A program made the position numbers and the translations under genes. From Chrysemys picta bellii (Eukaryota): a DNA stretch of 64,000 nucleotides. Positions within the stretch are counted from its first letter, which is position 1. Each line of letters starts with the position of its first letter. This document shows positions 1,690 to 48,247 of this stretch, piece by piece. The DNA is taken from assembly GCF_011386835.1 (NCBI RefSeq), contig NC_088813.1, positions 10,726,001-10,790,000 on the forward strand. Reading direction: 5' to 3'. The notes below the pieces were generated by a model that searched no databases, was not told the origin of the DNA, and worked only from the letters and a program-made list of their open reading frames with translations.

Positions 1690-4600
1690 CTGTATAGTTA
1701 GAGAATTAAATCACATCAGAGACACAGTTCTGAACAGGAGTCATGCATTAGTGAATACATCACTTTACACCAGACAAATTATGCACAGTACATGGCATTA
1801 GTTAACACCCAGCAGATCCATACAGGGAATTCAAATCTTTAAAGTCTGTGAATCAGAGGTCTGAACAGAACGACAGAGCACAGAGAAAGGCAGGCTGGCT
1901 TTTAAGACTTTTCAGCATCACCCAGCCCAGCCCTGTTTCCTGCCCCAGCTCGGGTGGAGACGGGGAACGCGACCCTGAAAAAAGTTTAGGGACCACTGAT
2001 ATAAACAAATTATTCTATTCCACCCAGTGCATGAACCAAAGCCCCCCCCCATACACACACAGAGTCCTTTGTGTACTTACAGTGAATGCCCAGGAGCAGG
2101 GAAAGGTTGGGATCCTTGCCCTGTGCTCTTTGAGTCACAATGCTGTAGACAGACTGCAAATCCTGTAGGCAGCTGGCCAGTTCACTGTGTAACTCATGGG
2201 CGAGATGTGCTGTCCCTACAGGAAGCGGTTGGTTCATCTCTACCTGCTGGAGGTGCTCCTGTAGGGTCAAATTCTTCTCAATCAGATCCTGGTTCTGCAC
2301 TGAAAGCTGAACAAACAAAAGTCACGTTAGCCAAGTCCTATGTCAGATAGGCCGTCTGATTCTAATGGCCCCTCAGCGTGGAGCAGGCATTACAGACTTT
2401 GGTTGCATGTATATGTTTGGGAACTGTACAGACACTGTTCTCTGAATCAGGATGTTTTCTTTTCACGGGACTGGAACTTTGTGTCTTGCCAGAAGGGGTA
2501 TATACCTTTAGCTGTGTGGATACTTGGTGGTGGTGGTGACCAGAAGAGTGGGTTTATATTAAGAATGTCCTCTGGATTCAAACCCAGCTAGAACAGTTTA
2601 AAGGTCAAATTTTGGGCCTGACCACCACAACACTAGTTTTTTTTTTAAATAGGAGCCTGCTTCTCTCAAAAGGGAAGAATATAAAATCAACAGGACAGGA
2701 AGCGCTTATCCCACTAGCTCCCTGGCGCCCTCAGTCTGGATAATAATGCAGTGGCTTCCAAGGGATGCCTGTGCTCTTTCCCCCTTCTCTTTGCCCAACT
2801 TGATGCAGGGTGAATTCTCCCTCAGGAGAGGCACTCAGTACTTGGGTCACTTTAAGACATCAGATGGAATTCAACCTAGAATCTTTCACTCAGGGCTTAT
2901 GAAGCTCTGGTATATAGCTGTGGTGAATAAGACTTCTTTACTGCACCCTGGTGGTCACATCAGTAACTACAATCACAATCCACACTAAGTTGGGAGTTAG
3001 GGAGACAAGCTGCTGCATGGGAGCCAGGCACAACCAGATCTCAGGCATTACAAAAGCAACAACTGGGTGGCGAGATGGATGAAAAAGAGAAATCATGGTT
3101 CTAAAATAGAGACCAGGAACCCCCTTTCTAGAGCACTGTCAGGGCAGCTAGCAGACTCTGACAAGATGCAGTGAAGGAGGACCCAGCAACTGCACGTTAA
3201 GTCCCCCGCTACAAGGCAGTTCATTGTTCATTCAGCTACTGGGTTCATACACAAACTCCAATTCAGACCTCTTTCACGGCAGTGCGTAGCTGCTGCAGTG
3301 CGTTTTCTCTTCGCGTCGCCTCCTCCTTCAGAGCCTGACTTGTCCCCTCTTCCTGCGACACCTGTTCTTCCAGGCTCTGCAGCAGACCCAGGGTGAGAAG
3401 TTAGTTCAACGTATTTTATCAATGCTCCAGAATTCCCAGACCTTCAGCATTCACACCTCTCACCTTTATTCGTGAAGACAACTGCTCCAGCTTCTTCTGC
3501 TGTTTGTCCACAATCTGAAATCAAAAGCAGATGCATCTCAGAGCTGAACATGCCCAAACGTACTCAGTAATACCACTTGGGATTCTTCCTTTGATCGAAT
3601 AGCTACAAATCAGTTTTTAATCACTTTAAATTACAGCCTGGTTTGTAAAGTGCTTTGAGATTCCCTAGTGGAAGGTGCTAGTAGGAATAGCAATTATGTA
3701 CTGAGACTGGAGAGGCTGCATTCTTGGGGTTCCCCCTCCCTACCTGCTTCCTTTTCTGGATTCTTCAGTTTCTCATCACTTTGATGTTTAAGAGACTACT
3801 ACAGAATTGTAGAGTATTCACACCAAGAATGGCTATCAGACCCCTCCAGGCGTGGCATGCTGAGAACTACTAGCGCATAGCACTTGTATAAGTACATAAG
3901 AGTTTGAATGTTAAACTTGAACCCCTGTTTTAATGCCTGATGTGGAACAGTCCAAGGAAGGAGAGAAATCTGAGTTAGTGTGGGGTAGTCTCACCCATGT
4001 CTGAGTTGTATATTCAGAGTTACCTTCCTGAGACAATCACAGTCTTTCTGCAGAGAATCATTTTCTGATTTCTGTTTCTCCACCTCCTGGACAGGTGACC
4101 CTCTGCCTGCACTCTTCACACACTGCTGCACTCTGTCCTGCAAGCTGAGATAAACAGCTCATCAAATGAACCGGCAAATATAAGAAATTTCAACAACGTG
4201 GCAGTGGTTCCCTTTTAAAGGGACAATAGGAGAAACTGACATCCTCTGCCACAGAACAGATACAGACGGGAAAAGCTTTTTCCACTGCCCTGTCAATGAT
4301 CCTCCATGTGACTTGAGGCGATTTATTTCTAAGGAATAGAGGGGAGCAATCACCCCCCGTGACCCAGTCAACCATTGCCCTCTTGGCTGAGGCTGTCACA
4401 ATGGGATGCTCAATTGTATCATGTGTGATATAGACACACATCCAATGGGAACTAGTCCGAGGCCACAAGCTGCTTTCACATAGCTTCAGTAGCCTCTGAT
4501 GAATACGAACCAAGGGACCTGGAGCAGAAAGGCTTCATGCGTTTCCCTGAGCCAGACCTCCATTTTGGAACAGCCACAAGTTATGGTCATTCAATTTTAT

Positions 4601-7600
4601 CTAGAAGTTACAGTCGAGCACAATATCCAGAGACTCAATACAAGCCCAGTTCATAACTACGCTGCAGTAGAAAGATGCGCTCTAGCGTATTCCACTTCTC
4701 TGTTCTCCGTCCTCAGGATTCTAGAGCTACTGCCTTCGCTCCTAGGCAGAAGTCAGGCTCGCCTTCATCTTTGGGGCTTTACCTGTGAACAGTGGAAAGC
4801 AACTCCAGTTCTTTGCGTTTTTGTGTTTCTAGCTGCATCTCCTGCTCTCTGCAGGCAGCCCGGACATCTCCAAGCTCTCTTTTCAGCGCCGTCACGGTTT
4901 CCTGCAGAGCAGAACTCTTCAGTTCCGATTCCTTTAACTGGAACAGAGAACATTGCTCAGCACTAACAAGTCTAGAGATCCTTTGCCATGTGCCACATTA
5001 GGGCTACCCTAGTAGTTGACAGGGATTTCTACTATCGCTGTGGCAATTTACAGCCCATAGCTCAGAACATTTCTCTTTCAGAAGGACAGATTGCAATTCT
5101 ACTAGCCTAGTGTCTGGATTATTGGCAGCAGTAAATTGTGGCATCCAGGCTAATGCCTCAAACGCAGCACTATACAAAGGATGTCATTTTACCTGCTGAT
5201 TCTGTTTCTGATGATCCTCCAGTGTTGGCAGATCAGCCAGGTAGCGCTCCAGGGTCTCAATTCTCTGCTGTCTCTCCCGGTTTTGCTCAGACTCCTTTTG
5301 GCATTTCTTTTTCAGACTGTTAATGTGTTTGTCTCTTCCCTTTACCTGCATGAAGAGACATCTGAAGGTTTGATTTGCTTATGTTATAATTTCCGTGTGT
5401 GTCTCTCTCTCTCCAGCTTATCTATCTAAGCATTTATGCAGCACCCATCACCAAGATAACAAATTGCCGCATCTCAGCACCTTTTCTTTTCACTGTTATC
5501 TGAAAGTGAACTTCATCCACTGGAAGTTATATGCTAGTTATCTGGTCAGCACATGAGCTCCTAAGCCACCCTCTGTAATTGCAGGTTTTTATTGCTGGTG
5601 AACCCAAGCAAGGAGCAGTTTCTGTACTCAAAGAAAGGATGTGCAAATACACTTGGAATTTAAAAGTTATCAAGTGCCACACACACACACACTTATAAGA
5701 TGCTGCACACAATTAAAAATACAGTTAAAATTCTGAAATATAAAAATAATTAAAACCAAGCAATATGAGGTCATTAAATACACAAATTTAACACAGCCCG
5801 CAGACTCTTAGCAAGTTGCAAATAAGGTTCTGAGTGTCGCAATGCGTGTGTGCTCCTGTCCTCTGAGCTCTCTTCAAATAATCAGAGGAACTTGAGAAAA
5901 TGCCACTTTGACTGAACAAACCTCTAAGGCAGCAACATAGGAGAGTTTCCCACTTTAGGAAAACTATGGGGCTCACCTAAACCCACTCCCCACAAACTGC
6001 AGATTTATGTATCATTTGTTTTTAGAACTGTAAAAATAGGATCACTGCATTTACAGGGAACAAGGACGAATAGGGCTGAGACGAACAAGAGAAGAGCGCC
6101 TCCAAATGGAGCACTCTTACTAGTACAAGGCAAGAATGGAACAGGCAGTTCTACTCAGGGTGTGACATTTATATTCCAGAATGCACAAGAAAAATAAGTA
6201 AAGGTTTAGCCTCAAAACACAACATTTTATTAATTAAGCCAAGACTCTTTCCTCACTGAATAGATCGTTTCAGCGTGTTTAAGTGTGATCCATGTGACAC
6301 AAACGTGGATCCATAAGTCAGACTTTACCTCGAGCAGGGGAAGGACTTTTATGTCAAAAGAGGGAGTCCAACCTATTTCTTGTACTAACCCTTAAATTCT
6401 CCTTCACAATGAAGCCTTAATTATATTGATTTGCTAATTATAATTAAGAGAGTGTGTCTAGACAAGTCACTGATGTTACAGTGATACACACTGAAGAAAA
6501 TTAAGGGGCAAAAGAAAGGCCACTCCAGATGTTTTTCTTTGCTTCTTTTTGAAAGCAAGTTGCTCCCAACTACAGCCTGATGGTGGCTGAGGTTTCTCTT
6601 TGGGGGCTGCAAGAGAAGAGAGCAGGCCCAATGACTCCACACAACAGGTGGTGGTGCCAGGAATGGCTCCTTGGGCCAATGCCAGTCACTGGGCCAACTC
6701 CCCACCCTTAAGGGGAAAAAAAAAAGGCATTGACGCAGTTCCAGAGCACCAACAGTCATACCCTCTCTTCTTGTTTCTTCAATTCTTCTGCATGCTTCTG
6801 CACGGTCTCCTTCAGTGTCTCCCGAATCAGTTTCGCATCCACCTCTGAAGCAGCCAGCTTCTTCTCCAGTTCAATCTTTTCCTTACTGAGGGATTCAGTC
6901 TTCTCAGTAAACTGTGCTCGCAGGAACGAGTTCTCCCGCTGCAGCTCCTGCCAACAGACACCCAGCAACCAGCGTAAGGGTTCCCATTGTCCACTAAACA
7001 TAGCAGACCCTATTCTCCAGAACAGAAGTTACAACTCTGATGTATTATCCACCCTTCACAGCTCCCAAAGATCTTTACAGCCCCTCTTATGCACCTGCAA
7101 AATCAGCTTGCACACTGGTGCTGTTAGCCACCGGCATTAGTAGCATGACCACTGCAGTTTGTTCAGAAATCAAAGGCTCTAAATGTCAAGACCACAGAAA
7201 AACCCAGATGGGCCAGATGAATTGGCACCAGCAGACACACCTGGAATGGACTTTTACCTTGCCCACCCCTCCTATGCAGAAATAACCTGCTAAAACAAGC
7301 ACACTGCAGCAAGTGGATTCAGTGCTTGCTATTTTCAACCGACTTCTTGCTGTTCCTACTTACCTGCATTCTCAACATGCAAATATCTCCATAGGGGGCA
7401 GCACAGCTAAGAAGAGCACTGTGAACCTGCAGCTCACTCTCACGCACTTTCTGCTCCAACTGGGAGATGTGCTGCCTCTGCCTGCAAAACAAATAATCAG
7501 ATCAGACAATACATCCTTCTCAAACATACCCCATAGTTGTTGCCCTAGCTGATAGGACAAGGCACTCTGCCAGCTATGTAAACCCAGTACAGTCAAAAAA

Positions 7601-10600
7601 CACACAGCTCCTCACTCAGGGCCCTCCATCATGACAAAAAACACAACTACATAGCTTAAAAATAGCCTGCAAAGGAATAACAATTTTTAAAGGCTTGAAA
7701 GCGTTTTTGTCAAAAACATGCTTGTTTTTCACGTTAAAAATTCAAGTCTTGTCTGCCCTGCAAGTTTCTACGGCGACTGGAGAATTTACTGGTGAAATTG
7801 CGTATGTCAGAAGAGTCAAGCTGAGCAAATGACCTGGGTAGGGATTTTTAGTCCAAATGTTTAAAACTTCACGCGTGTTAACACCTGACATCAATAGTCA
7901 ATAAGCACTTTGGAGAAAGGAGAGATTTGTTAAAGACTCACCAGACCCAAATAAACATCCCTGAGATCCCAAAGAGGTCCTCCAGCAAAACTAGGAAGAG
8001 CAGACTTGGCATTCCAAATGTTTCTCATGTAAACAAACAGGAGAACACATTTTAAAAGCGTTTAGCTCTTCCTTCTCTGTCACAAAGCAGGAAAAACGCA
8101 CAAAGGCAGTTTTTAAAAATCCTTTGCAGATCCTCTAAGTTAGCCACTGCTGCTAAGGAATCACTTGTCTCACTTCCTCACTATTCGCTTCCATGGGAAT
8201 CGCTCTGAAATCTCATGGAAGACAAGGGCATTTCTTCAAACGTTTTCTTACAAGTACTATGTTATTTGTTAGTGTCGATAAAAACCCACAGGATAACACA
8301 TTTCTTTTTTTTTTTTCTTTATTGCTCTCTCCTGAAATACCTCCTACCTGTCAATGAGGATCTCTTTTTCCTTAAGTAGATTCTCACTGGTGTTCAGGAT
8401 ACTGACCCATTGGGCTGGATCAGTGGAGTGCAGTGAAGTAGCATACATTGAAGGCTGGTGGCAAGCCGCCGCTCCATTTTGTAACTGAAAGAGAGTAGGA
8501 AGGAGAGGCATAGGGTTCACAGAAGGTAACTGCTGGGGCTATTTTGTACGCTGTGTGCTCATCTGGCATGCGAGCACGCAGAAAGTTCATCTAGTACGGC
8601 GCTATTCCAGCCTGTTTCTGGGCTCCGGGAACAAGTCATTTTGGCTGAGCTCAGGCACTGAGTTTATTGAATAATTTTAGACCACTGTGCTGGGTCACTG
8701 GAAGCCATTGGTTTCTAATATTGCTACTCACCAACTGCTCACTAAACAAATGGCTCCCCCTCCAGTGAACGCCTGATATTTTCATAAAAATCTACTTAAA
8801 ATTGTTCCACAAGTCTAGATATGGAGCGAGGTTAGTCTGCTAGTTGAAATACTGAGAACCACCACCTTCTATCTGCATATGTTTCCCCTGCACTTCCCAT
8901 CGGAAAGGGTAATCACCACCTGATTTAAACTATTGTGTAGCATTGCTGTGTTACGTTACATCAGGGGTGGGGAACCTACGGCACGCAGGCCAGATCCGGC
9001 CCGCTGCTTCATTTCATCCAGGCGGCAGCAAGTCTCCGCGCCACAGGCCTTGAGCCGCGGTGTCCCCTGCAGGGCTGGAGCAGCAAGCGCTGGCTCGCTG
9101 GGTTGCCAGAAGTTCAGTCGGCTTCGCGCAGCTCCAGGCATGTCCCTGTGGCCCCTGGGAGCAGGGGCAATCAGGGAAGCTCTGCACGCTGCCGCCAGCG
9201 CCAGCTCCGCAGCTCCCATTGGCCAGGAACCACGGCCATTGGGAGCTGCAGGGGCGGCGCCTGAGGGCAGCAAGCACACACAGAGATCCCTAGTCCCAGT
9301 GGGCAAGGAACCTGCCTTAGCCCCACTGCACCACCGACCAGGAGCCGCCTCAGGTAAGCGCCGCCTGGCCGGAGTCTGCACCCCGAACCCCCTGCCCCAG
9401 GTCAGAACCCCCTCCTGCACCCTAACTTCCTCCCAGACCCCGCACCCTGATCTGCATCCCAAACCCCTGCCCCAGCCCGGGGCCCCAGCCCGCACTCCAA
9501 ACCTCTTGGCCCCTGCCTGGAGCCCCCTCCTGCACCCCCAGCCCCACACCAGAGCCCAGAGCTCCGGGGTGGGGCCATAAATGAGGGGTTCAGGGTGTGG
9601 GAGGGGGTGCAGGAGGGGGCTCCAGGCAGGGGCCAAGAGGTTTGGAGTGCGGGCTGGGGCACTCCAAACCTCTTGGAGCCCTCACCTCCTCCCGCATCAC
9701 AACCCTCTGCCCCAGCCCAGAGCCCCCTCCCACACCCTGAACCCCTCATTTATGGCCCCACCCCGGAGCCTAGGGGAAGCCCCAAGCCTCTGTGCCCTCC
9801 CCCTCTCCAGGCTGGAGCCTCGAGCGCTAGCTTGCCCACTGGCGGGGGGGAAGCCCCGAGCCTCTGTATTCCCCCACGGGGCTGTGTGTGGCCCGCCACT
9901 GATTTTTTCTGGGGTCAGTGGACCCTGATAGAAAAAAGGTTCCCCACCCCCGTGTTACATGGTTGCCACATTTCAGTGATGTGAGGAATGACCTGTATAT
10001 GTAGATAGTTTTGAGATAATTTGTATAAAAATGTGTAATAGAAGCATAAGACATTCCGCCCCCTTACTGCATTAGTCAGGAATTGTGATGACATTACATA
10101 CAACTCCGAGAGAGTGGAGAGGGAAGGAGAAAGTGATTTCAAAGGGTTTTGTTGTTTAAAAAGTGGATCTTTTTCTACCTGCATCTGTTCTACTTGCAAC
10201 CGTATGTTGTCCAGCTGCTGCCTCCAAGCACTGAGTTCACAGGCCCTCTGATGTGGATGCAAAGTGCAAGGCTCCTGCCTCCACACCTGAGACTGAGCCG
10301 CCATTGGTTTCGAAAAGACGTTATTGGGCTGAAATCCCAATGGCATCAGTCTGCTCCCAGTGGGCCAAGTACCATTTCGTGGCTCACAGGCTTCACTGGC
10401 CCCAGTTGCTGGTTTAGTCTCTGGCAGCACTTTGTAAGTGGAAATCAAGCTTGGATCCTGGAACTTGTGGGCCGGGTCCGCGTGCAGCGTATCCAGCAAA
10501 CCAGATTGATTAAGGGTAGGCTCAATGGCAGGAGTGTCAAATTTTCGAGTGTCTTCCGCTCTCAGATGATCAGAAACAGGAAACCAGGACTGCTCAAAAC

Positions 10601-13600
10601 CATTTCCCCCAGACGTCCCGTAGAGATGCAAGAGATCCACTTGAGAGGATTTCACAGCAGTAAAACCTCCACTTCTTGTCAGCCCTCCATTTTCAGTGGA
10701 CGATCTTGGTACAGCTGGTTTGGATGAAACTGGGGCACTCTGCAAAGAGCTCGGCTCACCTGTTGAGTAGAGTGTGGCGGGTGACGTACCCAACGTAGAA
10801 GGCATGACATGGGCTGTGGGGATGGTCACTTGGGTTTTGATGGGCTGAAACGAGGAACTGCTACTGGAATTCCAAAATTCTAGGGAAAGAATTTCTGAGA
10901 GTTAGAATTAAAGCAACACTTTTCAATTACAAGACAATTGCCACCTTTTCTTATCCTACTAGGAACATTTCCTAGGGTCGAGGGGCTGGGGGAGACCATA
11001 CACAGTAGCAGGACAAGGGCACACTTGCACATCTGTTTTTTCCTTTATTGAAAGTTCCAGGTGCCCCATGATATTTATCTGCCCGAGTAAATGCAAAAGG
11101 GCAACAACTGCTATCATTCATCCTAGACCATTACATTTTGGTGTTAAAATTTTTTAATCAAAACTTATCGATAAACTTATCTGTCTAGTCACTTGTCAAT
11201 AAATCCTGAAATTGAGTAAAAAGGCTGAAACTTACTCAAGAACTGAAAACTGAGACCATGGTTACGTTCTGCTCATCCCACAGCACAGCGACTCTGCACT
11301 GTAACTAAAAGCAATAGGAGCTAAGCCCATGATAAGCTGTAAGCCTTGCTGAGCACACACCACAGAGCCCTTGACCTTAGAACTCCCCTGGAACATGGCA
11401 ACAAAACCAGCCGTTCCTAGAACTAAAAGTAATGGCCCTGTCCCACAGTCACAGGAAATGAGATCAAGTGCCGATCCGTCATCTCACGCAGCTACCAAAC
11501 CTGCCTCCATGGAAGTCTGAAGTTATTCTTAGTAACTCTCAGGTTTCAATAGAGCAACAACAAGAGCTCAACTGGGCAAATACTGAAGAGCCTTCTTTCC
11601 CAAGGTGTTGATTTTTCCACTTCCCCCTATATTTGGGTACCAATGTCATGTTTCCTCGGGCTAGCCTGTTTTCTCAATGCATTGGCATAAGGCCCATCCT
11701 GATGTGCGATTTCTCCAGCCCAGCTTTGGGACAGCGAGCTCGCATTCCCATATGTTTTTAACATCAGAGTGTTGCTATGGGAAGGAATGAAGTCACAATT
11801 TTAAAGTAACTGGAATGAGGAACTATGCAGGACCCTGTCAAATGTCTCGAGCTACATAAAAGATAATATGAAGGAACGTCATCTCTCAATGTTAACAAAC
11901 GGGGGGCGGGGGGAGAATCCCTACAGATATCAGCCCCACCTAGGACTCCTTCAAAGAGGAAACAGCCCTCCAAATAGACAAGAATACACATTTCAAACAG
12001 ACTGAGGAGAGTCAGTGCCGATTTCTTCTTTCAAGTCTCCTAAGCTTAGATTGCAGCATCATGGTCAGGAGCTATTGAGTTCTATCCACTAGCAATGGAC
12101 TCCACTGGGAATGAATCAGTCCCTGGAAGCATGGGAATGACCACCACAGCCAGTAGCATCTTATAACAAGTACGCTGATTTTAAGTCAAAATAGGATTCT
12201 AATAACTATCAGTATTGCAAGTCAATCTGGGCTCTTCGGAGAAGGGACATTGTCTTGCTGTATGTTTGTGGTGTTATCGACACCACCACCCCACTTTGAG
12301 TGCAACTGGAAATTTTCTTGTGCTGAGAAAGACTAGATGGGGAACCTCAAGGTGCAGGCATACAATACTTTGAAAAAATTATTTAAGAACACCTTGATCT
12401 TGAATCTTGTGTTGTTAGAAAATATGGCAAGTTTCAAATGGTACCATACACCTGAAGACGAATGGGAAAGTGAACAAGAAGCGTTTCTTCTAAAGAGCAA
12501 TACAAGTAAACCCTCCTTATTTGTGACTGAAAGGAGCTTCAGGTTAACGAGCAGTGTCCTATGCCAGTGGTTCTCAACCTTTCCAGGTTCCTGTACCCGT
12601 CCCAGGAGTCTGATTTGTCTTGCATACCCCAAGTTTCACCTCCACTTAAAAAGCTATTTGCTTACAAACTCAGACATAAAAATACAAATGTATATCAGCA
12701 CACTATTACTGAAAAATTGCTTACTTTCTCATTCTGTCTGTATGAAATTTTAGTTTGTACTGACTTCGCTAGTGCTTTTTATGTAGCTTGTTATAAAACT
12801 AGGCAAAGATCTAGATGTGTTGATGTACCCCCTGGAAGAGCTCTGCGTACCTGTGGTTGAGAACCACTGTCCTACACAAGCCTGACTACTGCCTCAGACC
12901 ACACATACACAAGAGTTTGTCTCATCTAGCACGAGGGAAGGCGCAGTTTCCTATATTGCTGTAGAGTACATTACTTGCATACAATTCAAAAAGCCAACAT
13001 GATGCTGTGGAAGTGTAGAAGCCTGAATTCAAACAACAGAAGGACAAGAAGTGGATCAGTTTCTCTCCCCCATTAAAAAGCAAAAACATGATTATTGCCC
13101 CATTGATAGCAATGTCAGTTTCCCGTGCTCTTAAAGTCATGGCCTTCTTGGGAAGCCTTGTGCTGAAAGGAGAACTCCAAGCTAACAATCCCCTGGTTAG
13201 GACTGGATGCAATATGAAAAGTGACCTCGCAGAATGCATCTCACTACACAATCAAAATGGTCAAGTCTAGATATCATTGAGAACTATTACACAAAAATTC
13301 CCTTGTTCTGTTTGCAGCTCAAGAGCCACAATATACCAGTCTCTATCCATTTTAATAAACGGACCATAATTCTTACAAAATACAGGTAAAGAGGAATATT
13401 GAGGCAATAGTTTTGTCCGGCATATTGTGTACAGCGAGATCCTCACACACTTTCTACTGGAAAGTATATTAATGTGAAGCAGAGGCTGAAGCTCAAGGTG
13501 TTCAGAATCCTTGTGCATCTTAAAGATTATTAATCTACCTCTGTCAAAAGTCATTTTAATTGACAAACTTGTAACTACCGTTGAAGCTAGAAATTGTAAT

Positions 13601-15101
13601 GCAGTTTGGCTAATCCCCTTTCAAGCTTTAGATAAGATAATGAATCTCTAAACCAATATATATTTGTTTACATTTTAGGTTACAAAACTGACGGCTAAGT
13701 GTGAAAGTGTACAATAGTCTCACTACAGGATAGGTCGTCTTCCCCTCCATTTCATACGCTAGGGCTGTTTCTGTATCGGGAGGTTCTTGACGCTTGGTTT
13801 ATGTTGTAAGAAGAACTAGAAAGAATTCTGCACTTTTACTATAAGGATCAGACATTCAGACTCACCCTCTGTGCTGTCTGAGCAGGAGGTCCCGATTGCT
13901 GTATCCCCACTGTCAGCCATACTTGAACAGTGACCAAAGCGACTCTGGAACTTCACAGACAGAGTTGGGGTTTTCCAGTCGGTCTCCAAAGAACAGCTCT
14001 TTTGACCTGTATTAGAGTCTGGGAAAGAGTCACACTGTGGGCATATATATAATTCAGAGTACTACCTATCAGTATTACACCGAGAGAGTGTTCCCCAAAG
14101 ATCAACCTTGAGAACCTACACTGAGGGGAAAGTATCCCCAGCCTGTTCCACCTGCTCAGAGATATTTGCCAGTGAAGGAGACTGAAAGGTAATAAATGAA
14201 CAAGATGACTTTGCAGCTGATTTCAAAGAAATAAAGTTTCAGATTTATTTATAGGAGACGGCAAATGGAAGAGACCTATTAAACCCATCCTTGTCCTTGC
14301 CCCTGCTGGGGTGAACGGAGGAAATATTAGAAATTAATTTTACCAAGGAGACCAACAAGCCAATTTAATTTATCAAATGGAGTTTGAACTTTTGGTTACA
14401 AAATCGTTTTTCCAGTTTAATTTAAATTCATTAAAAAAAAGAAGTGGATCTCTCCAGAATGATTAGCAAGTCAATTGCTTGAGAATCAGCATTAAGCTGT
14501 ATTCACACATTTCCTTACTGGGTGGATATGAATTGTTCTTTGTTTGATTCCTCTGAAATATCACTGCTTGTGAAATCTCTTTCCTTATGGCAAATCTTCT
14601 AGCAACAGGCACAGAGGACCTAAACCAAGTCAGCAAGAGAGGAAAGGACACCACTATGGAAGATAAGAATGCAATGCATATCTCGCTGGTATCACTATGC
14701 ATGTGCTCCGAAACTGAAGAAGTGGCAGAGTGACAGTGTTTGCATACGGAAGTACAGAGATAATACTGGTGATGGTAAAGATGCATTGCAATATTATCAT
14801 GTTATGAACTCCCCCTTTGCTGGGTTTTAAGAGAGGTTGGTGTATGTGTAAGTGACGATCTGTCCCTGGACAGTCATGCAATTGTTTTGCAGGCACAGGA
14901 TATTAACAGATCAAATAATTATTTTAAGATTTTATTTTTAATAAAAAGCTTTTGGTAAATAAGCCACGTCCTGGGTTTCCTAAGGAATCTCCTCCCAGGA
15001 TATGGCAGGAGTATGACTTTTAAGGAAAACAATTCATAATTCAAACCTGTTGGACTTGTCTGCTGGAACCTCAGGTCTGGGCATTTCTCAAGGGTGGCCA
15101 T
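1526..15101 (-). CDS. CEP85: Centrosomal protein of 85 kDa, complete spliced CDS (13 coding exons, 2328 nt, 775 aa)
   Basis: join on minus strand: 15101-15047, 14018-13866, 10879-10179, 8484-8348, 7481-7364, 6947-6762, 5345-5193, 4937-4783, 4144-4024, 3514-3464, 3376-3269, 2306-2081, 1689-1526. All introns GT-AG, phases compatible. Translation [10 protein letters not shown]...[17 protein letters not shown]...[13 protein letters not shown]...[20 protein letters not shown]...[14 protein letters not shown] matches CEP85 as recalled. Confidence 0.97.
2081..2306 (-). CDS. CEP85: CEP85 coding exon 12
   Basis: [19 protein letters not shown]...[17 protein letters not shown]. Confidence 0.96.
3269..3376 (-). 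CDS. CEP85: CEP85 coding exon 11
   Basis: [36 protein letters not shown]. Confidence 0.96.
3464..3514 (-). CDS. CEP85: CEP85 coding exon 10
   Basis: [17 protein letters not shown]; followed by an 87-nt intron. Confidence 0.93.
4024..4144 (-). CDS. CEP85: CEP85 coding exon 9
   Basis: [40 protein letters not shown]. Confidence 0.92.
4783..4937 (-). CDS. CEP85: CEP85 coding exon 8
   Basis: [18 protein letters not shown]...LELLSTVHS. Confidence 0.94.
5193..5345 (-). CDS. CEP85: CEP85 coding exon 7
   Basis: [51 protein letters not shown]. Confidence 0.96.
6762..6947 (-). CDS. CEP85: CEP85 coding exon 6
   Basis: [20 protein letters not shown]...KKQEER; AG/GTATGA. Confidence 0.96.
7364..7481 (-). 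CDS. CEP85: CEP85 coding exon 5
   Basis: [24 protein letters not shown]...CMLRMQ; AG/GTAAGT. Confidence 0.96.
8348..8484 (-). CDS. CEP85: CEP85 coding exon 4
   Basis: [11 protein letters not shown]...[22 protein letters not shown]; AG/GTAGGA. Confidence 0.95.
8962..9952. mobile_element. Non-autonomous hAT-type DNA transposon (MITE), 991 bp, with internal duplicated C-rich blocks
   Basis: 16-bp TIR CAGGGGTGGGGAACCT / AGGTTCCCCACCCCCG (1 mismatch); 8-bp TSD cgttacat / tgttacat. Confidence 0.9.
10179..10879 (-). CDS. CEP85: CEP85 coding exon 3 (large, 701 nt)
   Basis: [26 protein letters not shown]...[12 protein letters not shown]; core of ORF 9915..10829. Confidence 0.96.
12565..12869. mobile_element. 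hAT-type MITE
   Basis: TIR CAGTGGTTCTCAACC / GGTTGAGAACCACTG; TSD tcctatgc / tcctacac (6/8). Confidence 0.88.
13866..14018 (-). CDS. CEP85: CEP85 coding exon 2
   Basis: [18 protein letters not shown]...[16 protein letters not shown]; AG/GTGAGT. Confidence 0.95.
15047..15101 (-). CDS. CEP85: CEP85 coding exon 1 ([18 protein letters not shown])
   Basis: ATG at 15101, acceptor AG upstream (exon starts 15119), donor GTTTGA, phase 1. Confidence 0.88.
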
Positions 15102-15997
15102 CACAGCTATTCCAGTCAACTATAAAATTAAAGAAATAGAATCAACATAATCCAATCCATTTTTGCCACTGGCCAAGCAAGTATACAAATCCTACACTGA
15201 CATAAATACTACAGCTACTCTTCGCTATAGGAAACATTTATCTTTAATACCATGTTTCACATTTAATTAGCACCTCCTTTCCACTACTTTTCCACTATAG
15301 AACAGCAGTTAACACTTCAAGAAGTGCAATTAGTCTGGATTAACACACTTTTCAGAAATGGAAAATGTTCTGGTTTGTAACACTCTTAAAGTGCTCAGCA
15401 TAAAACCTGGCCACATGTTATACTATCTTGGTTATTTATAGGGCATCAGCCACCATAGTATCTAGGTATTCGTTCTATATCTATAGATATTCAAAATTTC
15501 CTTTTACAAACCTCAGCACTTGGCCAGTTTATTTCTGCCCTCTGAAGATTACTTTATGCAGCTACACCCAGAAACCTGGTCAGTCAGTCATAAGTGATGT
15601 TACACCATCAGCTATGATCATGCTCTATCCAGAGCATTGGTTGACTTTATTGTATATGAAATCATCTCAAACACATGAATCTCCTGCCCAGAGTATGACT
15701 ATAATATCTAGCACTTGCAAACTTCTTCATTATCAAATTCAAGCTCTCATTTCCTTCAACCCTGTGAAATAATAACTCCCTATTATCCAGTCCTTGCAGG
15801 CCCCACTTTAATTAAGTAAATTTGTCATCCAAAGTCCTCATGGAAAATATTTCTATTTTGAAAACAGAGCTAATGATTTGGCACCAGTCACATGGTGAGA
15901 CAGTAGGGAATGCAATGAGATATGGGGAGAAGTGGAGTTCCATTCTGAGCAAAGAGAAACAAAACTTGGTGGTTAACTCAGGTTAATGGATTATGTG

Positions 15998-17630: not shown

Positions 17631-17639
17631 TTAATCCCC

Positions 17640-18350
17640 GGGGAGAGCGGCAGGGACCGGGGCTCCAGCCCCCGGGGGTATATCTAGGGGCAGGGGCGTA
17701 GCGGGACTGGGGAGGGTCGGAGCTAGGCGGGGGGTCCCGCGTCGGGCTGCGCCCCTAGGGGGAGGCCCGGCGGGTGCGGGGAGCGGACCCCGCGGGAGGC
17801 CGGGGGGGTTACCCGGGGGATAGCAGTTACCGGGGGGAGGGGCAGAGGGAGTTTACCCGCCCCCTCACCTGGCTCCGCTCGGCTCTCGAGCTCTCACTGT
17901 CTCGCGGCGCGGACGCGCACGGAGTCGACGACCGTTACAGCCGTGCCGGGGGGCGGGGGCACCAGGCTAGCTAACCACGCCCCCACGCCGCGCCGAGCCT
18001 ATCCGGAGCGTCGGCTCCGCCTCGTGCCCTCCCACCCCCTCGCCATTGGCCCGCGGGATCCGCTCCCCGCCCCAGATACATGAGCTCCGCCTTCCCGCTG
18101 GGAGCGCTGAATAACGGCAGCGCATCACGAAGAAATGTCTGCCACAGCGACCCGTAAGGAAAGGAGGCGGGGCCTAGGGCTGCCGCACCATTGCCCCGCC
18201 CCCTTCCCAACCCTCGCCTACCCCTAGCCCGCCCCTGACCCTTCTCCTCCCAAACCCCAAGTCCCACCCCTAGCCTCTGCCCCCCGCCTTGCAGCCCCAC
18301 GTGGCATTGCCTGGGCTGGCCCAGGCCCCGCCCCCTAGCCCTGGGGCCAC
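17640..18350 (-). promoter_or_regulatory. CEP85 CpG-island promoter and non-coding first exon (donor after 17869)
   Basis: Very GC/CpG-rich; CCAG|GTGAGG donor on minus strand at 17868-17867; CCAAT box (18045-18049) and GC boxes upstream; exact TSS unknown. Confidence 0.75.
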
Positions 18351-18526
18351 TCTCAGTTGCAGGTTTTGCAGCCAGTGTTGGAGGCTCCTCAACATCTGTT
18401 CCCTGCTCTCCTGCCCCGCCCCCCCGCCGTAAAACATCTGCACTGCCCCGTCCGCCTAGGCCAATACAGGGGTTGGTCCCCCCAGAACTCAGAGTCACCT
18501 GGTATTGCTCAATGCCGCACAACCCA

Positions 18527-18759
18527 GGGCTTAGCTACCCTTGAAATGCTACAGCGGTGCCGCTGTGTGACCACCACCCACATCCACGGGAGGGGGTCTC
18601 CCGGCCGCCCCCCAGAGAGGCGGTACCTGGGCCAATGGGAGAATTCTTCTGCTACGCCATGGCTCGGGTTAGCGTAACTACAGCGCGCAGGGGTGTGGAC
18701 TTTGCACGCCGCTGAGCGACGTAGCTGGGTCGAGCTCACATTTTAGTGTAGACCAGGCC
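18527..18759. mobile_element. Non-autonomous DNA transposon with ...AGTGTAGAC.. terminus (PIF/Harbinger-like)
   Basis: Ends in agtgtagaccaggcc; degenerate inverted start ggcttagctaccc; related copies near 300-495, 23490-23770 and 52420-52670. Superfamily inferred. Confidence 0.55.
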
Positions 18760-18998
18760 TATATCTCTACAAATGCACTGGAGAGATGCACTGGACTGCA
18801 GCCTGGTTAGGGCCTCTGGGCACTACCCAGTACCAATAACCAATACCAATAATACGTTATCTTGAGAAAGAAACTGTAACCTCGTTAATAACCCCCTTAC
18901 TGCAAGCTAGGGGACTGGCCTGAGATGAATAGCCACTGGAACATGCTTCTATTCCAGAGCACTAAGGCCCGGAGCAGTTTCATAGCTAACAAAATTTA

Positions 18999-19100
18999 TC
19001 ATAGAAATGCAGGGCTGCAAGGGACCTTTAGAGGTCATCAAGTCCAGCCTCCCGCAGTGGGGCAGGACTAAGCCAACCTAGACCACCCCTGACAGGCGGA
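18999..19100 (-). mobile_element. CR1 LINE 3' end fragment
   Basis: tcatagaaatgcagggctgcaagggacctttagaggtcatcaagtccagcc is the reverse complement of the CR1 3' tail. Confidence 0.7.
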
Positions 19101-21035
19101 TGCACTTCTATAGCCTGCTTTACCCTTAGCGCTAAGCACCAGATTGTAAAAAGCCATTTAGGCACCTAACTACCATTGCAGTGTTGTACCGAACAGTAGA
19201 CCAACCCCTGTAGGACAAAATGCTTCAGTGACCTGCCAGCATTCCTTTGGCTTCAATGAAACCACTCCCTCCTTGAAGGTAACTGATTGTTGTATCAACA
19301 GGACTTTATTTTTAAAGTGGAAACCTCTTTACCAAGCTGCTGCTGCACCCTCTGTAACTCTCCCTCCGCCTCCTCAACTCCTCCCCCCTCCTTCCTGTTT
19401 CCTGGCCTTTCACACTCCCAACAGCCAGTGCTCCCAGTTCTAATAATCACAAGCAACATCTAAACACCACACTGATCATACAAGCTCCCACCCCTGAGAA
19501 CTTTCTCCCACAGTCATGTTCAAGATACAGAAAAGTTGGATCACTTGGCCAGAGGGTCCTTTTTGTAACCTAGGCAGGTGCTGCTGGCTGAAAGGGACTA
19601 TAGCAGGACAAAGTATTTCTACCAAGCAAACCTGTACCGTGAGTGGAGGAAAGCTCTAAGCATTTTCAGCTACCAACTGTGAGAAAGATGCCAAAGTTGT
19701 TATGTAGGTTTAGAGCTACTGTTTATACCACAGAGCACCAGTTGGGGGGGGGGGGGGAGGGAGAATGCTGCCCTCTGCTCAGCAGGCCTTCTCACACCTG
19801 GCAACGTTTGAGAAGTAGAAATAAGGACACTTGGGAAGACAAACATTGGCACCTTGCTCCTTTAAATACATGAGGCTAGAAGAGCAGAGCAGGGGGGAAA
19901 GGTCCATAGCAGAGCCAGGCCTAGAACCCAGTTGGGCGGATTCCTTTTCTGTTGCACCAGCCAACTTCTGTCATGTGGGGAAAATCTAGAGTAATGGCCA
20001 TTCCCTCTCTGGAGTTACACTAGGTTCATGCTGGGGTAACTGAGAAAGGATGTTAGCCCACTGCCTAGATAGAGTGTAGAGTGCAGTGTGTGCGGTACAT
20101 TGTGTACAGCACCGTGCACAGGATGGAGCCACCCGGCATCTTTAATAAGGAACATTTCCATGGCAATGAGAACCTGGAGCCTGCAGCTGCCAATTCACGG
20201 ACACCTGCACAGCGATTCTAGTCTCCCCTCCCGCCACGTCCATCAGTCTTCCAGAGCTCCCATTCCTGTACACTCCCAGCCAACCCGACACACCCAAATC
20301 CCCTGTCCCACCACCCAATCTCTCCCAGGTCCCCTTTCCACACACCCCTTCTCCTAGACCCATCCTCCACCCAGACACATGCCCTCTTGCACAACGCAAA
20401 TGCTGGCGTTCATCACCCCTCTCACACCCTTCCCCCACCCCAATCCTCCAACCTCTTTGCCCTTCACGAAGCTATTGGGCCAAGTTCATCCCTGGTACAG
20501 TCAGAAGTATCATGGTGGGGCTGATGCGATCCAAGCAGCATAAACGGTCTAACTGAAGGTGCTCTCCGTGCAGTTACCCCTGGTGGAGGTCAATAGAGCA
20601 TTGTTCACTGGGGCCCCTTCCTGGTGCATATTAATGATTAGAGCCTTTCGTTATGTCTGGCCACGCACTAGGCCCAGAGCAGAACGAGGGGCGACGTTAA
20701 TGTGTAACCAGGGGGTATGGGAATGGGGGTCACTTAACATTTAATCAACAGGCTTGAAATGTTAGGAAGGAAACGTGTTCGCGACAGGATTTACAAAGTC
20801 AAGGTGATGCGGACAGTAGAACCATAACCAACAGCTTCACTTGGGCTCCAGCAGCCTCCAGCCCGGCCCGAGAGCGCCCTGGAGACGAGCGACGACTTTC
20901 TCCTTTCCGCTCCAGGCTGGGTGCACTCCAGAAAACGCCTTCCCGATTGCACAGCGTCTTTGCCCGACTCTGCATCCCAGCCCGAGGGAGCTCCCTTGAA
21001 GAGACTAAGAGACCAGGGTCCTTTCTCATCAGACC

Positions 21036-21635
21036 ATGGCAACTGGCTCCATGGTGCTTGGACTGGTGGTGGCTCCCATGGGATGGGTCTTGCTGCTGGC
21101 AGCCACGGTGACCCCGCAGTGGAGAGAATTCTCCAGGCGGCCCGGCTTCCCGTGGGACGTTTCCTTCAGCGACGGTCTGTGGGAAAGCTGCGTGGAGGTG
21201 ATCAGCGTGCCGGGCAGGGTGTGCCAAGCCATCCCCCAGGAGACGGCCATCTCCTGGCCCATGCAGATGCTGAGAGCACTCACTGTCATCTCAGTGCTTA
21301 CAGGGGTCCTGAGCTACTCTCTAGCCCATGTGGGGGTACGCTGGTGGACACACCAGCCCAACCCCAAGCTTACGGGAACTGCTGGACTCCTGCTGGTTCT
21401 CTCTGGAGCCATGTATCTATGTGCCACATCCTACATGGCTTACAAAGTCCTAGAGAACATGGCCAACCCCCAGACCCCTGCGGGGGACAAGTTCCGGCTT
21501 GGGACCTGTCTCTACCTTGGCTGGAGTGGCGGAGTCGCTGAGATCTTGGCTGGGATCTGCCTGGCCGTCAGTTTCCAAAGGAAGCAGGAAAGCAGCCCAG
21601 GGAATGTGGCTGCTCCATATGAGGTGGATTACTGA
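21036..21635 (+). CDS. Claudin, CLDN23-like, uninterrupted CDS, 199 aa
   Basis: accATGG Kozak; claudin signature W29...GLW47-49..C52...C63; four hydrophobic helices; LGLVVAPMGW..T.TPQWR and GVRWW..QPN..L.G..G recall CLDN23; acceptor-like ctttctcctttccgctccAG at 20914-20915 suggests a 5' UTR intron. Confidence 0.93.
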   Translation: MATGSMVLGLVVAPMGWVLLLAATVTPQWREFSRRPGFPWDVSFSDGLWESCVEVISVPGRVCQAIPQETAISWPMQMLRALTVISVLTGVLSYSLAHVGVRWWTHQPNPKLTGTAGLLLVLSGAMYLCATSYMAYKVLENMANPQTPAGDKFRLGTCLYLGWSGGVAEILAGICLAVSFQRKQESSPGNVAAPYEVDY

Positions 21636-23489
21636 GGAGGGGCTACCAGGCCAGCGCCGGGAGAGGAAACTGAGGGACTGTTCTCCGGGAGACTACAACT
21701 GTCTTTTCCTTGTGCACTGAGTCCACGTGGGTCTCCTGCTGTAGCTGCTTGAGCATGACTGTGCCTTTACCTTGCTGCGCCAGGATCAAGCCGCACATCT
21801 TCAACCCCGCAGGACTGGCATTGCTGGTAACAGGGATGTACGGGCCGGCCAGGCAGGGAAAATCACCCCCCTCAATCAAGCCAATTTTAAAGATGGGCTG
21901 ATGATCGTTTCCCTAATGAGGTGTCTCAGGGGCCCTGCCAGCTTTGGGGTTTTACCAGCCTATAGGTTTGTCTTCCTGATGCTACTTGAAAACGCCGCCT
22001 CCCCCCCCCCCAACTCAGGGGAAGGGGCTGAGGGAGGGTGCAGCAGAAGGGGAGTGCATGCTTCCAGCTGTGTCACATCTGTAAGGGGTGGGGGCAGCAT
22101 CGTGAGGGCAGCCCAGGGGGGAGCTGGGGTGGAGAACTGGCAGCGGAGGCTGGCCCAGAGGTGATCCAGCTGAGGCACATTGATAAGGGAGGAGCACAGC
22201 TGGCAGCGGAGTCGGGACTTTCCAAGCACAGATTTGATAGGGGTGGGATGGTGCCTGCTGCTGCTGGGGGAGGGTGGGAAGGAGACATGCAAATGCTTCT
22301 GGCCCTCAGGCAGAAGCCAGCAGTGCTCAGCTGCTCTCCCTGGGCTATGGGGCTCTGCTCTGGGGCCCCGGAAGTGCTCAGATAACACAGCACATGATGA
22401 CATCACCCACCTCCAGAACACCCTGGCATAGTCCCTGTCTTTGAAGTCATCTTATTTCCTCCTGAGAGGGGCTGAATATCCCTCAGGGCAGGAGAGGCCA
22501 GCCCCTGAAGCGAGAAGAAGGCAAGGAAAGAGGGATGGAGAAAGACTATTGCACAGAGGGGTTTGGTGAGACTCAGGGTCAAAGTGGGGGTGGGATCCTG
22601 TCTCTCTGGAGCCAGCTACTCCCTGCATTTTAGAGACACTTAAAATCCAAGAAAAGGAGGCAAAGCTGGACCTGTCATCAACACAGTTTTATTCATGCCC
22701 CAAGAAAACCAACCTTGCCTGCTTCAAACAACCCCTGTCTATTCCAGCTCTAAGTGGCTAGATGCAGAGAGATTGAGGATGGAACAAAGAAGTGGTTTGA
22801 TCATATATAAAACCTAATCCTCCCCGTATACAAATCCGGCAGGGGAGAGTGCTTAGAAAAATAAAACAGCTTTGACAATAGAAAAACAAAAATATAACAA
22901 TGGCTGCTTTCCTTTCCCCGAAGCTCGAAAGGGATGGAGGGATTTTCCCCCCTCCCAACAGGAACGAGGCCCCAAGCCTGTAGCCAAGCTGAGACTGGAG
23001 GTACTGAATTAGAGAGGGGGCGAGTAAGGGAATGCTAGGGCAGCAGAACCAAGCAGCGAGGGTGGTAACTTTAGGGTGAAGGCAAGCTCAGGCACCAAAG
23101 CCTATTGAAAGCCATAGGAAAACGCTCACTAAGCTTCGAATTGGACGCCAGTCCTGGCAGCTGCTGACGAGAACGAGATGATGGAGGCTCAACCGTCTCC
23201 TGCCCTAAGCAGCCAAGGAAATGCCCTGCTAACGCACTGCCGTTAGCCAGAGGCAGCTTCTGGTTCACATGTAGGGGGACAGGGTGGGTCCATTTCATTG
23301 GAGCAAACCTTGGTTCCTATAAGAGTCAAGGTTTAGCTAAAACAGGCCCTGAACTGATTTGTCAGCAAAGGACGGGGACTTGGGATCAGGCACTTGCAAA
23401 ACAAAAAATAAAAATGGACAGTTAAAATGCTAGACAACAGCTGGCTATTTTTAGTTAAAATTACTGGCAGGGCTGCAGCGAGCCAGCTG

Positions 23490-23770
23490 GTGTCAGCCTG
23501 TCCATGCTGCATCAGGAGTGAGCCCCCCAGCCCGCCTCCTCAGACTTGTGTTAGTGCTGCAAAAACAGCTGTGTAGACACTGCGGCTCGGGCTGGTGCTT
23601 GGGCTCTGACAACTGGGGGATGAAGGGGGGTGGGTGGGCACGAGAGCCCACGTCACAACGTTAAAGCAACATCGACCCGGCCAATTTTAGAGCGGTAGCG
23701 TGAGCCCTGCTAGCACACGTCTGGGGAGGTCAGCGGGGAGGCTTGCTTTCCAATGCAGTGTAGACAGGTC
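23490..23770. mobile_element. Non-autonomous DNA transposon (..AGTGTAGAC.. family) in presumed CNKSR1 3' UTR
   Basis: Terminal gcagtgtagacaggtcc and internal gctgtgtagacactgcggctcggg motif. Confidence 0.5.
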
Positions 23771-24732
23771 CTGGATGTTTAAACAGAACTCACTCAACGA
23801 CACATCCATCCAGCGAGGGGAGCTGGATCAGAACTTTCCCCTGGCTAACCAGCCTACATCTGTAACGAGGCCTTGCAGCAGAGGATCTCAAAGAGCTTTG
23901 GCCCCATGAATTAATGAAACGACACAGCAGCTTTATGAGACAGATCAGTCTTATCCCCTTTTAAATACAGGGAAACTAAGGCAATCGCCCGAGTCACACG
24001 CGGGAGTTAGCAGCAGAGCAGAGAATGGCACCTGAGTCCAACTCTGTCCACTAGCAAACACTGTAACACAATTATTTGTACATGGATGAAAACCAGCCTC
24101 TCTCTTTATCAAATGAATATCTACCACCGCAAGCGGAGCCAGAGGGGGGCCAGGCAGCACTTCTATCCATAAAAGATCTTCCATCACACGGGTTCTTGGT
24201 TCCGATCGGGCTCTAGATGGATGTCGAGTGATGAGAAATGCCAAGGCATCAACATGTTGAATATCCCAATCTCAGAATTGTCCCCAGAGGGACCGTCCTG
24301 GCCTCACAGCGCTGGGGTCAGTTACTCAGTGAAGTATATGGATGCATATTCATTAAGCATCACTGGGAAATGGAAACAGCAGCTCTTTTAAAACAAGCAA
24401 GACTCTCTAGACCCAACCGAGGATCCATTCTGAGAATTCCTCCCTTGTCCTCAGAAGGACAAGGCTTTGTCAAAAGTGGGTCCCTACATAAAAACCTGCT
24501 TTCAGGGGAGAGCCTCAAACGGTGTCTTTAAAATGCAGCCTACTTTCCAGTTAAATTGACGCGCTGCGTGTTGTGAGCGAGCACCATTCCTCCTTGCTCT
24601 CAGAGCATCGCGTTTCTTACTGGGACAGAGACGACAGGAATCTCTCTCCGGAACGAGAGAGGGACGGGTTATTCCCTGCACTGAGGTTTATGAAGGGAAC
24701 GTTATTGCCAGGATCTGCCCCGTTTCCATGTG

Positions 24733-47158
<22,426 letters not shown>

Positions 47159-48247
47159 GCCCAGCTCTGCTCCCCAGCTGGGACTTCCCTGTTCCCGGAA
47201 AGTCTGTCCAGGGGCAGGCCTCCCGGACACACCTGAGCTGAGGCAGCCCCACCAGGTAACTCCCAGCCGGCTCTGGGGTTGGTGCAGCTGCCTGTCGCTC
47301 AGCAGAGAGAGGCCCGCCCCCTCTGGAGGACCCTTGCTCCCCTCCCCACGGGGAATTCCAAACTCTTAGCAACCCAGCTCAGAGCTCTGCCCAGCCTCCA
47401 ACCCCCCCAGTCTCACTGATTCAACAGGCTTACACACCCAGTTCCCCCAGGCTGTCTCCTGACTCTCTTAAAGGCACAGACCCACAGTAGGTTGTTTACC
47501 TCGGCCCTGGCCACTGAGGGAGTGTTCCCTAGTGGGCAGAGGGCAGGACTGGGTGCTAGGAGCGCCAAGTGCCATCAGATTCCGCATCTGATCATGGACG
47601 AGTCACTAACACAACACCTGCTATCTCGGCTGACATGCCCGGCACGGAAAGGAGGACTTGCAGAGCTAAAAGCAGGAGCGGCTACAATTTGAACTAAAGA
47701 AGCAAGGTCCCTGAGCAGGGGCTGTCACAGGTATCGTCTGTAGCTCCGGCATCTGTAACACACGCTCACCATTGACATTCCGTGCCTCAGTTTCCCCACC
47801 TGTAAAATGAGAATAAGTACGACTGGCCTACCAGCTCATCGCAGGGGGATCATGAGAGTTTAAGTCTGTAACGTGCTTTGAGATCCTTACATGGAATATG
47901 TTGTAAAAGTACAAAGTATTATTACTAACAGAGTGTGGCTAAACATCGCATCCTCACTCTAAATATTAAAGCAAACACCGTCCTTGCTGACTGCATATCC
48001 GGGAGCGTGTCCGACTGGTTCACGCAGAGGCTGGCAATCAGAAACTCCTGGATTCTATACCCAGCCACTGTCTCAGTGCGTGAGCATGGGCATGTCACTT
48101 AGCCTCAGCTTCCCTCTCTCTAAAATGGATTCACCTTGGTAAATACTTGGAGATCACAGAATCTTAGAAATGTAGGACTGAAAGGGTCCTCGACTGGTCA
48201 TCTTGTCCTATCCCCTGCACTGAAGCAGGACTAAGTATCACCTAGAC

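Follow-up and report, generated by a model that had tools for sequence, protein, structure and literature searches.

A single-exon claudin between CEP85 and CNKSR1 in Chrysemys picta bellii belongs to an unnamed lineage related to CLDN23

Introduction

What is the claudin that is encoded between CEP85 and CNKSR1 in the turtle Chrysemys picta bellii? The open reading frame lies in a stretch of 64,000 nucleotides (RefSeq assembly GCF_011386835.1, contig NC_088813.1, positions 10,726,001 to 10,790,000, forward strand), referred to here as the window. Claudin catalogues and nomenclature rest on the mammalian set, and the orthologous group to which the turtle protein belongs, called clade A below, has no mammalian counterpart in the databases searched. 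A paper describing or naming a claudin between CEP85 and CNKSR1 was not found in searches of the literature. Public annotations already predict the gene and give it names that do not agree; it is an unnamed new member of a well-known family. An earlier note, made from the letters of the window alone, had proposed that it is an ancient paralog of CLDN23 kept in turtles and lost in mammals.

Gene Model

The claudin coding sequence runs without interruption on the + strand from the ATG at 21036 to the TGA at 21633-21635 and comprises 199 codons (Table 1). An identical protein is encoded on record CM062340.1 of GCA_011386835.2. The uninterrupted frame and the strong Kozak context (accATGG) were both part of the earlier reading and both stand. 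The start methionine is aligned with the N-terminal methionine of the orthologs and of other claudins, and an in-frame TAA at 21006 excludes an N-terminal extension within the claudin exon. Given that the same 199-aa frame is likewise intact in more than 30 other species, its integrity is far beyond chance. A run of about 15 G occurs in the intergenic DNA 5' of the claudin (window 19745-19759), and nothing in the Chelonoidis locus is aligned to window 19036-19535, a short way 5' of this run.

Table 1. Features of the claudin locus, in window coordinates
Feature	Position	Strand	Evidence
CEP85 exons, upstream neighbour	2013..15688	-	blastn collinearity with annotated CEP85 of Morus and Chelonoidis
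Closest in-frame upstream stop, TAA	21006..21008	+	10 codons 5' of the ATG
Start context catcagaccATGG; A at -3, G at +4	21027..21039	+	sequence reading
Claudin coding sequence, single exon	21036..21635	+	open reading frame, PF00822, claudin fold, no indels vs three turtles
Cytoplasmic tail; PYEVDY at 21615-21632	21579..21632	+	alignment
Candidate polyadenylation signal, first AATAAA 3' of the claudin stop	22860..22865	+	pattern match only
Second candidate AATAAA	23407	+	pattern match only
CNKSR1 exons, downstream neighbour, convergent with the claudin	24799..47159	-	blastn collinearity with the Morus, Chelonoidis and caecilian loci

Neighborhood and Synteny

The window is collinear with two annotated ortholog loci, that of Chelonoidis abingdonii, where DNA identity is about 90%, and that of the gannet Morus bassanus. 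This collinearity puts the CEP85 exons of the window at about 4.7-15.7 kb and its CNKSR1 exons at about 24.8-47.2 kb; the Morus locus has a further match at 54.8-57.3 kb. A weak match to CC4_CEP85 is found at 2013-2318 on the - strand (E 2.6e-4). The annotated CNKSR1 of Morus and Chelonoidis has CRIC, PDZ and PH domains, and a PH-domain exon at 29750-30007 of the window (- strand, E 9.6e-7) falls inside the CNKSR1 range. The position between CEP85 and CNKSR1, as first claimed, is borne out by these matches and by the collinear loci.

Synteny in other vertebrates had been proposed as a check, and the order is kept beyond Chrysemys. CEP85(-)/claudin(+)/CNKSR1(-) is found in three other turtles (Chelonoidis, Dermochelys and Emydura), in the anole Anolis sagrei and in Morus; in these five sauropsid loci the interval from CEP85 to CNKSR1, which corresponds to window 15700-24800, holds no further annotated gene. 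In the caecilian Rhinatrema, the 3' exons of CNKSR1 lie downstream of the claudin. From the tetrapod ancestor at the latest, clade A has kept its place between CEP85 and CNKSR1. In the shark and bichir loci there is no called neighbour within 10 kb of the claudin. In human, CATSPER4 lies between CNKSR1 and CEP85.

The annotation of Emydura shows a further arrangement. On its contig (L010:8584-20600) the CNKSR1 model, on the strand opposite to the claudin, continues beyond it and takes it into the CNKSR1 range, an arrangement that points to 3' ends that overlap or to an alternative terminal exon.

Claudin Fold and Family Membership

The turtle protein matches PF00822 (PMP22_Claudin) over residues 5-174 with E 3.7e-15 and 56.7 bits (cut-off 26.7). 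The signature of the first extracellular loop (ECL1) of claudins, W-(x)n-G-L-W-x-x-C-(x)8-10-C, is present as W29, G47-L48-W49, C52 and C63; among 114 aligned claudins there is no variation at W29 or C63, and conservation is at least 90% at G47, W49 and C52. Sequence matches to solved structures in the PDB are claudin-19, -15, -4, -3 and -9 (E 1.7e-18 to 3.4e-14), with claudin-19 as the best.

An AlphaFold2 model built on the alignment of the 114 claudins (mean pLDDT 88, pTM 0.80) has helices at residues 4-25, 74-101, 110-143 and 157-186 and an extracellular sheet formed by four ECL1 strands and one short strand of the second loop (ECL2). When the model was compared with the PDB by Foldseek, the best 19 matches were all claudins (probability 1.00, TM 0.74-0.89), headed by claudin-4, -19, -3, -9 and -15. 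TARP, GSG1L, Cav gamma and MP20 were matched with lower scores (E 1e-11 for claudins versus 1e-6 for TARPs). The claudin identity, the W-GLW-C-C signature and the four transmembrane helices that had been read from the letters are thus recovered by profile, alignment and model.

The classic -Y-V PDZ-binding C-terminus is absent from the turtle protein, which ends P-Y-E-V-D-Y. Some accepted claudins, e.g., CLDN12, also lack the -YV end, so its absence is no bar to membership in the family.

Tail and Conserved Residues

The tail, QRKQESSPGNVAAPYEVDY, comprises 19 residues and ends PYEVDY, in agreement with the earlier reading of it as non-canonical: the -DY end differs both from the classic -YV and from the LPCDSDL of CLDN23. 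It is conserved from coelacanth to birds, with PYEVDY or a close variant in coelacanth (AYEVDY), caecilians (PYEVDY or PYEVNY), lizards (PYEVDY, PYRVDY and PYDVDY), turtles and birds; a salamander has PCDVDY. Among the aligned clade A proteins, an end of this type is absent from those of sharks, bichir and bowfin, which have unrelated ends. The V-D-Y sequence fits a putative PDZ ligand of the hydrophobic-x-hydrophobic kind.

Across clade A, 25 residues are invariant, those of the claudin signature included. One position stands apart from other claudins. E54 (window 21195-21197), two residues past the first ECL1 cysteine, is invariant in 28 of 28 aligned clade A proteins, while the position is unconserved in CLDN23-type and other claudins; it adjoins the position aligned with the claudin-15 pore residue D55. 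This hints at a charge-dependent role for E54. At the position that follows the second ECL1 cysteine, the residue (Q64 in the turtle) bears no charge and is not conserved.

Distribution of Orthologs

A word-index protein search with the turtle claudin returned 37 proteins of the group at E 1e-50 or better, almost all of them 194-205 aa long. Identity to the window protein is 74-96% in turtles, 62-70% in lizards and geckos, 60-68% in birds and alligator, 55-59% in caecilians and a salamander, 55% in coelacanth, 50-52% in two sharks, and 48% in bichir and bowfin. Beyond clade A there is a gap, followed by claudin-23-type proteins at 37% identity or less. The same gap is seen with other searches. 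An exhaustive HMMER search of 1.84 billion representatives gave only three proteins at E<1e-30, all of clade A, with the next at 2.7e-24, and a profile of clade A found 36 group proteins at E<=8e-70 and then 2.7e-28, a gap of 40 orders of magnitude. The closest named proteins outside clade A are all claudin-23 or claudin-23-like. The automatic database names of the clade A proteins themselves conflict (claudin-1-, 3-, 7-, 19- and 23-like).

In the word-index, HMMER and clade A profile protein searches, no clade A protein was found in mammals, frogs, teleosts, lungfish or snakes. For mammals, the search extended to about 15 billion predicted proteins, including open reading frames called on Logan assemblies, and it yielded no member among these proteins. 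Loss in mammals, as proposed at the outset, agrees with these results at the protein level. The companion claim, that the gene was kept in turtles, is correct and too narrow, for it is also kept in lizards, birds, alligator, caecilians, a salamander, coelacanth, sharks, bichir and bowfin.

Within birds and squamates the gene seems to be unevenly distributed. The match lists contain no clade A protein from a snake, a galliform, an anseriform or a named passerine; snakes, galliforms, anseriforms and passerines do have an annotated CLDN23. The patchiness suggests that some lineages can do without the gene. The bird locus is very GC-rich (64%), and assembly gaps could therefore account for the pattern as well as repeated loss. 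Two gene models are unusual. The Pelodiscus model is 288 aa long, is flagged 'LOW QUALITY PROTEIN' and carries an N-terminal extension of 88 residues, and the Alligator model (187 aa) stops short of the PYEVDY tail; assembly problems or lineage-specific damage may be the cause in both.

Three Claudin-23-Type Lineages

Relationships were examined with IQ-TREE (LG+C20+F+G4, 56 rows; supports given as bootstrap / SH-aLRT) and with FastTree (155 rows, 95 of them outgroup representatives), and the two trees agree. The outgroup consisted of the claudin types found among the best 150 HMMER matches; more distant types, which score lower still, were left out. All claudin-23-type proteins form one superclade (100/98 in IQ-TREE, 99 in FastTree), and representatives of snake CLDN7, rodent CLDN25, CLDN10, CLDN15-like and claudin-4-like proteins all fall outside it. 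In FastTree a lamprey 'claudin-4-like' protein comes out, with weak support (78), as sister to the superclade; it was assigned to the outgroup in IQ-TREE, where it is set apart from the superclade by the 100/98 branch.

Three lineages make up the superclade. Clade A (100/97) contains the window claudin, and its inner order (sharks; coelacanth; bichir and bowfin; amphibians; amniotes) agrees with the species tree. B1 (100/99) contains proteins of elephant shark, gar, smelt and cyprinids, labelled claudin-23 or 23-like. B2 (100/97) is the true CLDN23, from ray, elephant shark, teleosts (cldn23a/23.1), amphibians, sauropsids and mammals; the mammalian CLDN23 rows (bat, pangolin and lemur) are in B2, and clade A is outside it. 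B1 and B2 group together (98/94) as the sister of clade A. Both a true CLDN23 and a clade A protein are present in each of Chelonoidis, Emydura, Carettochelys, Morus, Grus, Alligator, Anolis sagrei, two geckos and three caecilians. With chicken CLDN23 as the query, mammalian and sauropsid CLDN23 likewise group together, at 47-51% identity.

Since cartilaginous and bony fishes are present in each of A, B1 and B2, both duplications predate the jawed-vertebrate crown. Three claudin-23-type lineages were, on this sampling of proteins, already present in the common ancestor of jawed vertebrates, and the timing would fit the two early vertebrate genome duplications. A claudin-family phylogeny had been named as a check on the original proposal. 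Among the claudins sampled, it reveals no direct orthology of clade A to a named one, and the proposal of an ancient paralog of CLDN23 rather than an ortholog is upheld, with clade A apart from B2 and true CLDN23 in the same species. That proposal implied two old CLDN23-type lineages; the great age of clade A is confirmed, and with B1 the number has to be raised to three.

Databases label the members of B1 'claudin-23', yet they are not orthologs of mammalian CLDN23, and it is teleost cldn23a/23.1 that represents the true ortholog group. B1 has been seen only in elephant shark and ray-finned fishes.

Selection and Damaged Copies

The 600-bp coding sequence has no indel relative to Chelonoidis, Dermochelys and Emydura, with identities of 96.5, 94.0 and 90.3%, respectively. 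In the flanking kilobases the corresponding identities are 86-94, 84-93 and 73-85%, with many gaps. For pairs of turtles, dN/dS is 0.23-0.49, and for pairs from different sauropsid lineages it is 0.15-0.35; the deficit of nonsynonymous changes is significant (p 2e-2 to 1e-11). For pairs chosen with paths that share no branch, the deficit has p 6e-3 for the window versus Chelonoidis, 4e-3 for Dermochelys versus Emydura, 4e-3 for Morus versus a second bird, and 1e-11 for the window versus Anolis. This is a coding gene under purifying selection, and the constraint is moderate. The turtle dN/dS of 0.3-0.5 seems high for a claudin, an impression formed with no other claudin as yardstick, and for this reason the constraint is described as only moderate. 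Relaxed selection, which had been set out in advance, together with a lack of transcription, as an outcome that would count against the original proposal, is not what the values describe: dN/dS is 0.15-0.5 with a significant nonsynonymous deficit and no indels in the coding sequence.

Bird orthologs were also examined on two Logan contigs (L007 and L008), which are genomic and collinear with gannet intergenic DNA and CNKSR1 introns. In L007 (SRR25169925, positions 634-1239) a TAG replaces a Leu codon at about codon 21, and a C run at about codon 147 contains an insertion of 1 bp. In L008, which comes from another run and is 95.6% identical to L007, the claudin frame is intact. Many of the differences are C>T or G>A. 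The damage in L007 represents either a lineage-specific pseudogene or sequencing or assembly errors. A partial, frame-shifted match on the same contig was considered as a possible mammalian remnant and rejected, the contig being that of a bird (85% identical to Morus over 5.9 kb).

Function and Alternative Explanations

Taken together, the results are probably explained by a functional single-exon claudin gene of the unnamed clade A, the sister of B1 + B2, with a role in barriers or strands that is predicted from its relatives. The gene is presumably expressed, and the protein would insert into the apical junction like other claudins, and its extracellular sheet would pair in cis and in trans with other claudins, so that the paracellular path is sealed or tuned. 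CLDN23 is one of the non-classical claudins and strengthens the barrier via cis and trans contacts with CLDN3 and CLDN4 (PMC10556055). This behaviour of CLDN23, together with the lack of a conserved charge after the second ECL1 cysteine, makes a barrier-forming or strand-modulating function likelier than a charge-selective pore. Without -YV, anchoring to ZO-1 and hence recruitment to the junction cannot be assumed; the PYEVDY tail probably docks a cytoplasmic scaffold in a manner other than the classic contact of -YV with PDZ1 of ZO-1.

Three other explanations bear on different parts of this one. One is that the turtle gene, having changed its position or its sequence, is orthologous to one of the named human claudins (CLDN23, or CLDN1, 3, 7 or 19). 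The names given in databases, among them claudin-7-like, claudin-19-like and claudin-23-like, would suggest so, and claudin-19 is the best match by sequence among solved structures. These names, however, are mutually inconsistent, and identity is no more than 37% to any claudin outside clade A, yet about 50% to the shark orthologs. A true CLDN23 exists in the same species, and in the tree mammalian CLDN23 belongs to B2 (100/97) and snake CLDN7 and the classic claudins lie outside the superclade (100/98), with clade A separate from both (100/97). Displaced orthology is therefore exceedingly improbable. It is also highly improbable that the frame is an untranscribed or decaying relic that happens to be open. 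The moderate dN/dS of 0.3-0.5 among turtles, the apparently pseudogenised copy in one bird and the 'LOW QUALITY PROTEIN' model of Pelodiscus are what a relic might leave, but more than 30 taxa, from sharks to birds, keep the frame of about 199 codons open, 600 bp are free of indels between flanks that have many, independent pairs show a significant nonsynonymous deficit, and the invariant residues of clade A, 25 in number, include the claudin signature.

The remaining alternative accepts a functional protein with a claudin fold and denies that it builds strands. Some non-classic claudins and other proteins of the PMP22/claudin superfamily act as membrane regulators or adhesion partners, and the turtle protein could do the same. 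It has a tail without -YV, it belongs to the non-classical CLDN23-type branch, and Foldseek also matches it to TARP, GSG1L, Cav gamma and MP20, albeit with lower scores. In addition, CLDN23 was found by modelling to interact with CLDN3 and CLDN4 in preference to itself (PMC10556055). Against such a role, the W-GLW-C-C signature, ECL2 and the TM4 LYLGW that claudins use in their contacts are fully conserved, and true claudins are far better matches than TARPs (E 1e-11 vs 1e-6). An activity apart from strands is thus unlikely, and a claudin that takes part in barriers or strands is preferred.

A bolder reading of the lineage and its tail can be formulated. Clade A would be a CLDN23 ohnolog from the era of the two genome duplications (2R), and PYEVDY would be a class II-like PDZ ligand, with V at -2 and Y at 0, and its scaffold would be one different from ZO-1. 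Conservation of the tail would go back more than 400 million years. CNK1, the PDZ protein encoded by the convergent neighbour CNKSR1, might be such a scaffold, since the two genes have been linked since the tetrapod ancestor. The combination is a long shot; if it were true, loss in the mammalian stem would have removed a distinct link from junction to signalling.

The jawed-vertebrate ancestor had, to judge from the tree, three claudin-23-type genes, of which clade A has been kept in sharks, coelacanth, caecilians, salamander and sauropsids. Naming clade A would mend misleading labels, e.g., claudin-7-like and claudin-1-like, and would give studies of reptile and bird epithelia one more barrier gene to include.

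Comparison with Known Claudins

The closest named relative of the turtle claudin, both by HMMER rank and in the tree (superclade 100/98), is CLDN23. Both are single-exon, four-pass proteins with common features in TM1 and ECL1; both have a V-R-(C/W)-W...P motif after TM2, and neither has a conserved charge after the second ECL1 cysteine. In contrast to these likenesses, CLDN23 and clade A split before sharks and bony vertebrates parted, and they are only about 30-36% identical. After TM2, clade A has W-W where CLDN23-type proteins have C-W; TM4 contains LYLGW in clade A versus LVLGY in CLDN23, and ECL2 of clade A is like that of classic claudins. Clade A is found at the CEP85-CNKSR1 locus, with no mammalian protein in the databases searched, whereas CLDN23 has a separate locus (8p23.1 in human). 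The tails are also quite different: 19 residues ending PYEVDY in the turtle claudin versus about 60-130 residues ending LPCDSDL in CLDN23. A tail of 111 aa has been given for CLDN23 (PMC10556055). Being short, with a conserved non-canonical end, the tail of clade A lends itself to comparison with that of CLDN23 when the role of the tail is in question.

The fish lineage B1, the third member of the superclade, also consists of short proteins (200-247 aa). Its bony-fish members have tails with a Y-E-(V/I/L) motif like that of clade A (YEVNC, YEISC and YELN), so that an end of the Y-E-V type may be ancestral to the superclade. B1 differs from clade A in that it groups with true CLDN23 (98/94), is found in fishes only, and has a shortened ECL2.

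Classic claudins (CLDN3, 4, 9, 15 and 19) have the same fold as the turtle claudin (TM 0.74-0.89), the same W-GLW-C-C signature, the N-P motif of ECL2 and G-x-x-L-Y-L-G-W in TM4. The turtle protein is nevertheless only 25-30% identical to them. The spacing between the ECL1 cysteines is ten residues rather than nine, W-W occupies the place of C-T after TM2, and the C-terminus is -DY rather than -YV. The hybrid of CLDN23-like and classic features described at the outset is real though ordinary. The N-terminal half is nearer to CLDN23-type proteins (32-35% identity, versus 25% to other claudins) and ECL2 is nearer to other claudins (29%, versus 14-18% to CLDN23-type proteins). A recombinant or chimeric origin was considered for this pattern and dropped, as it fits retention by clade A of ancestral ECL2 and TM4 features that were lost in the CLDN23 lineages.
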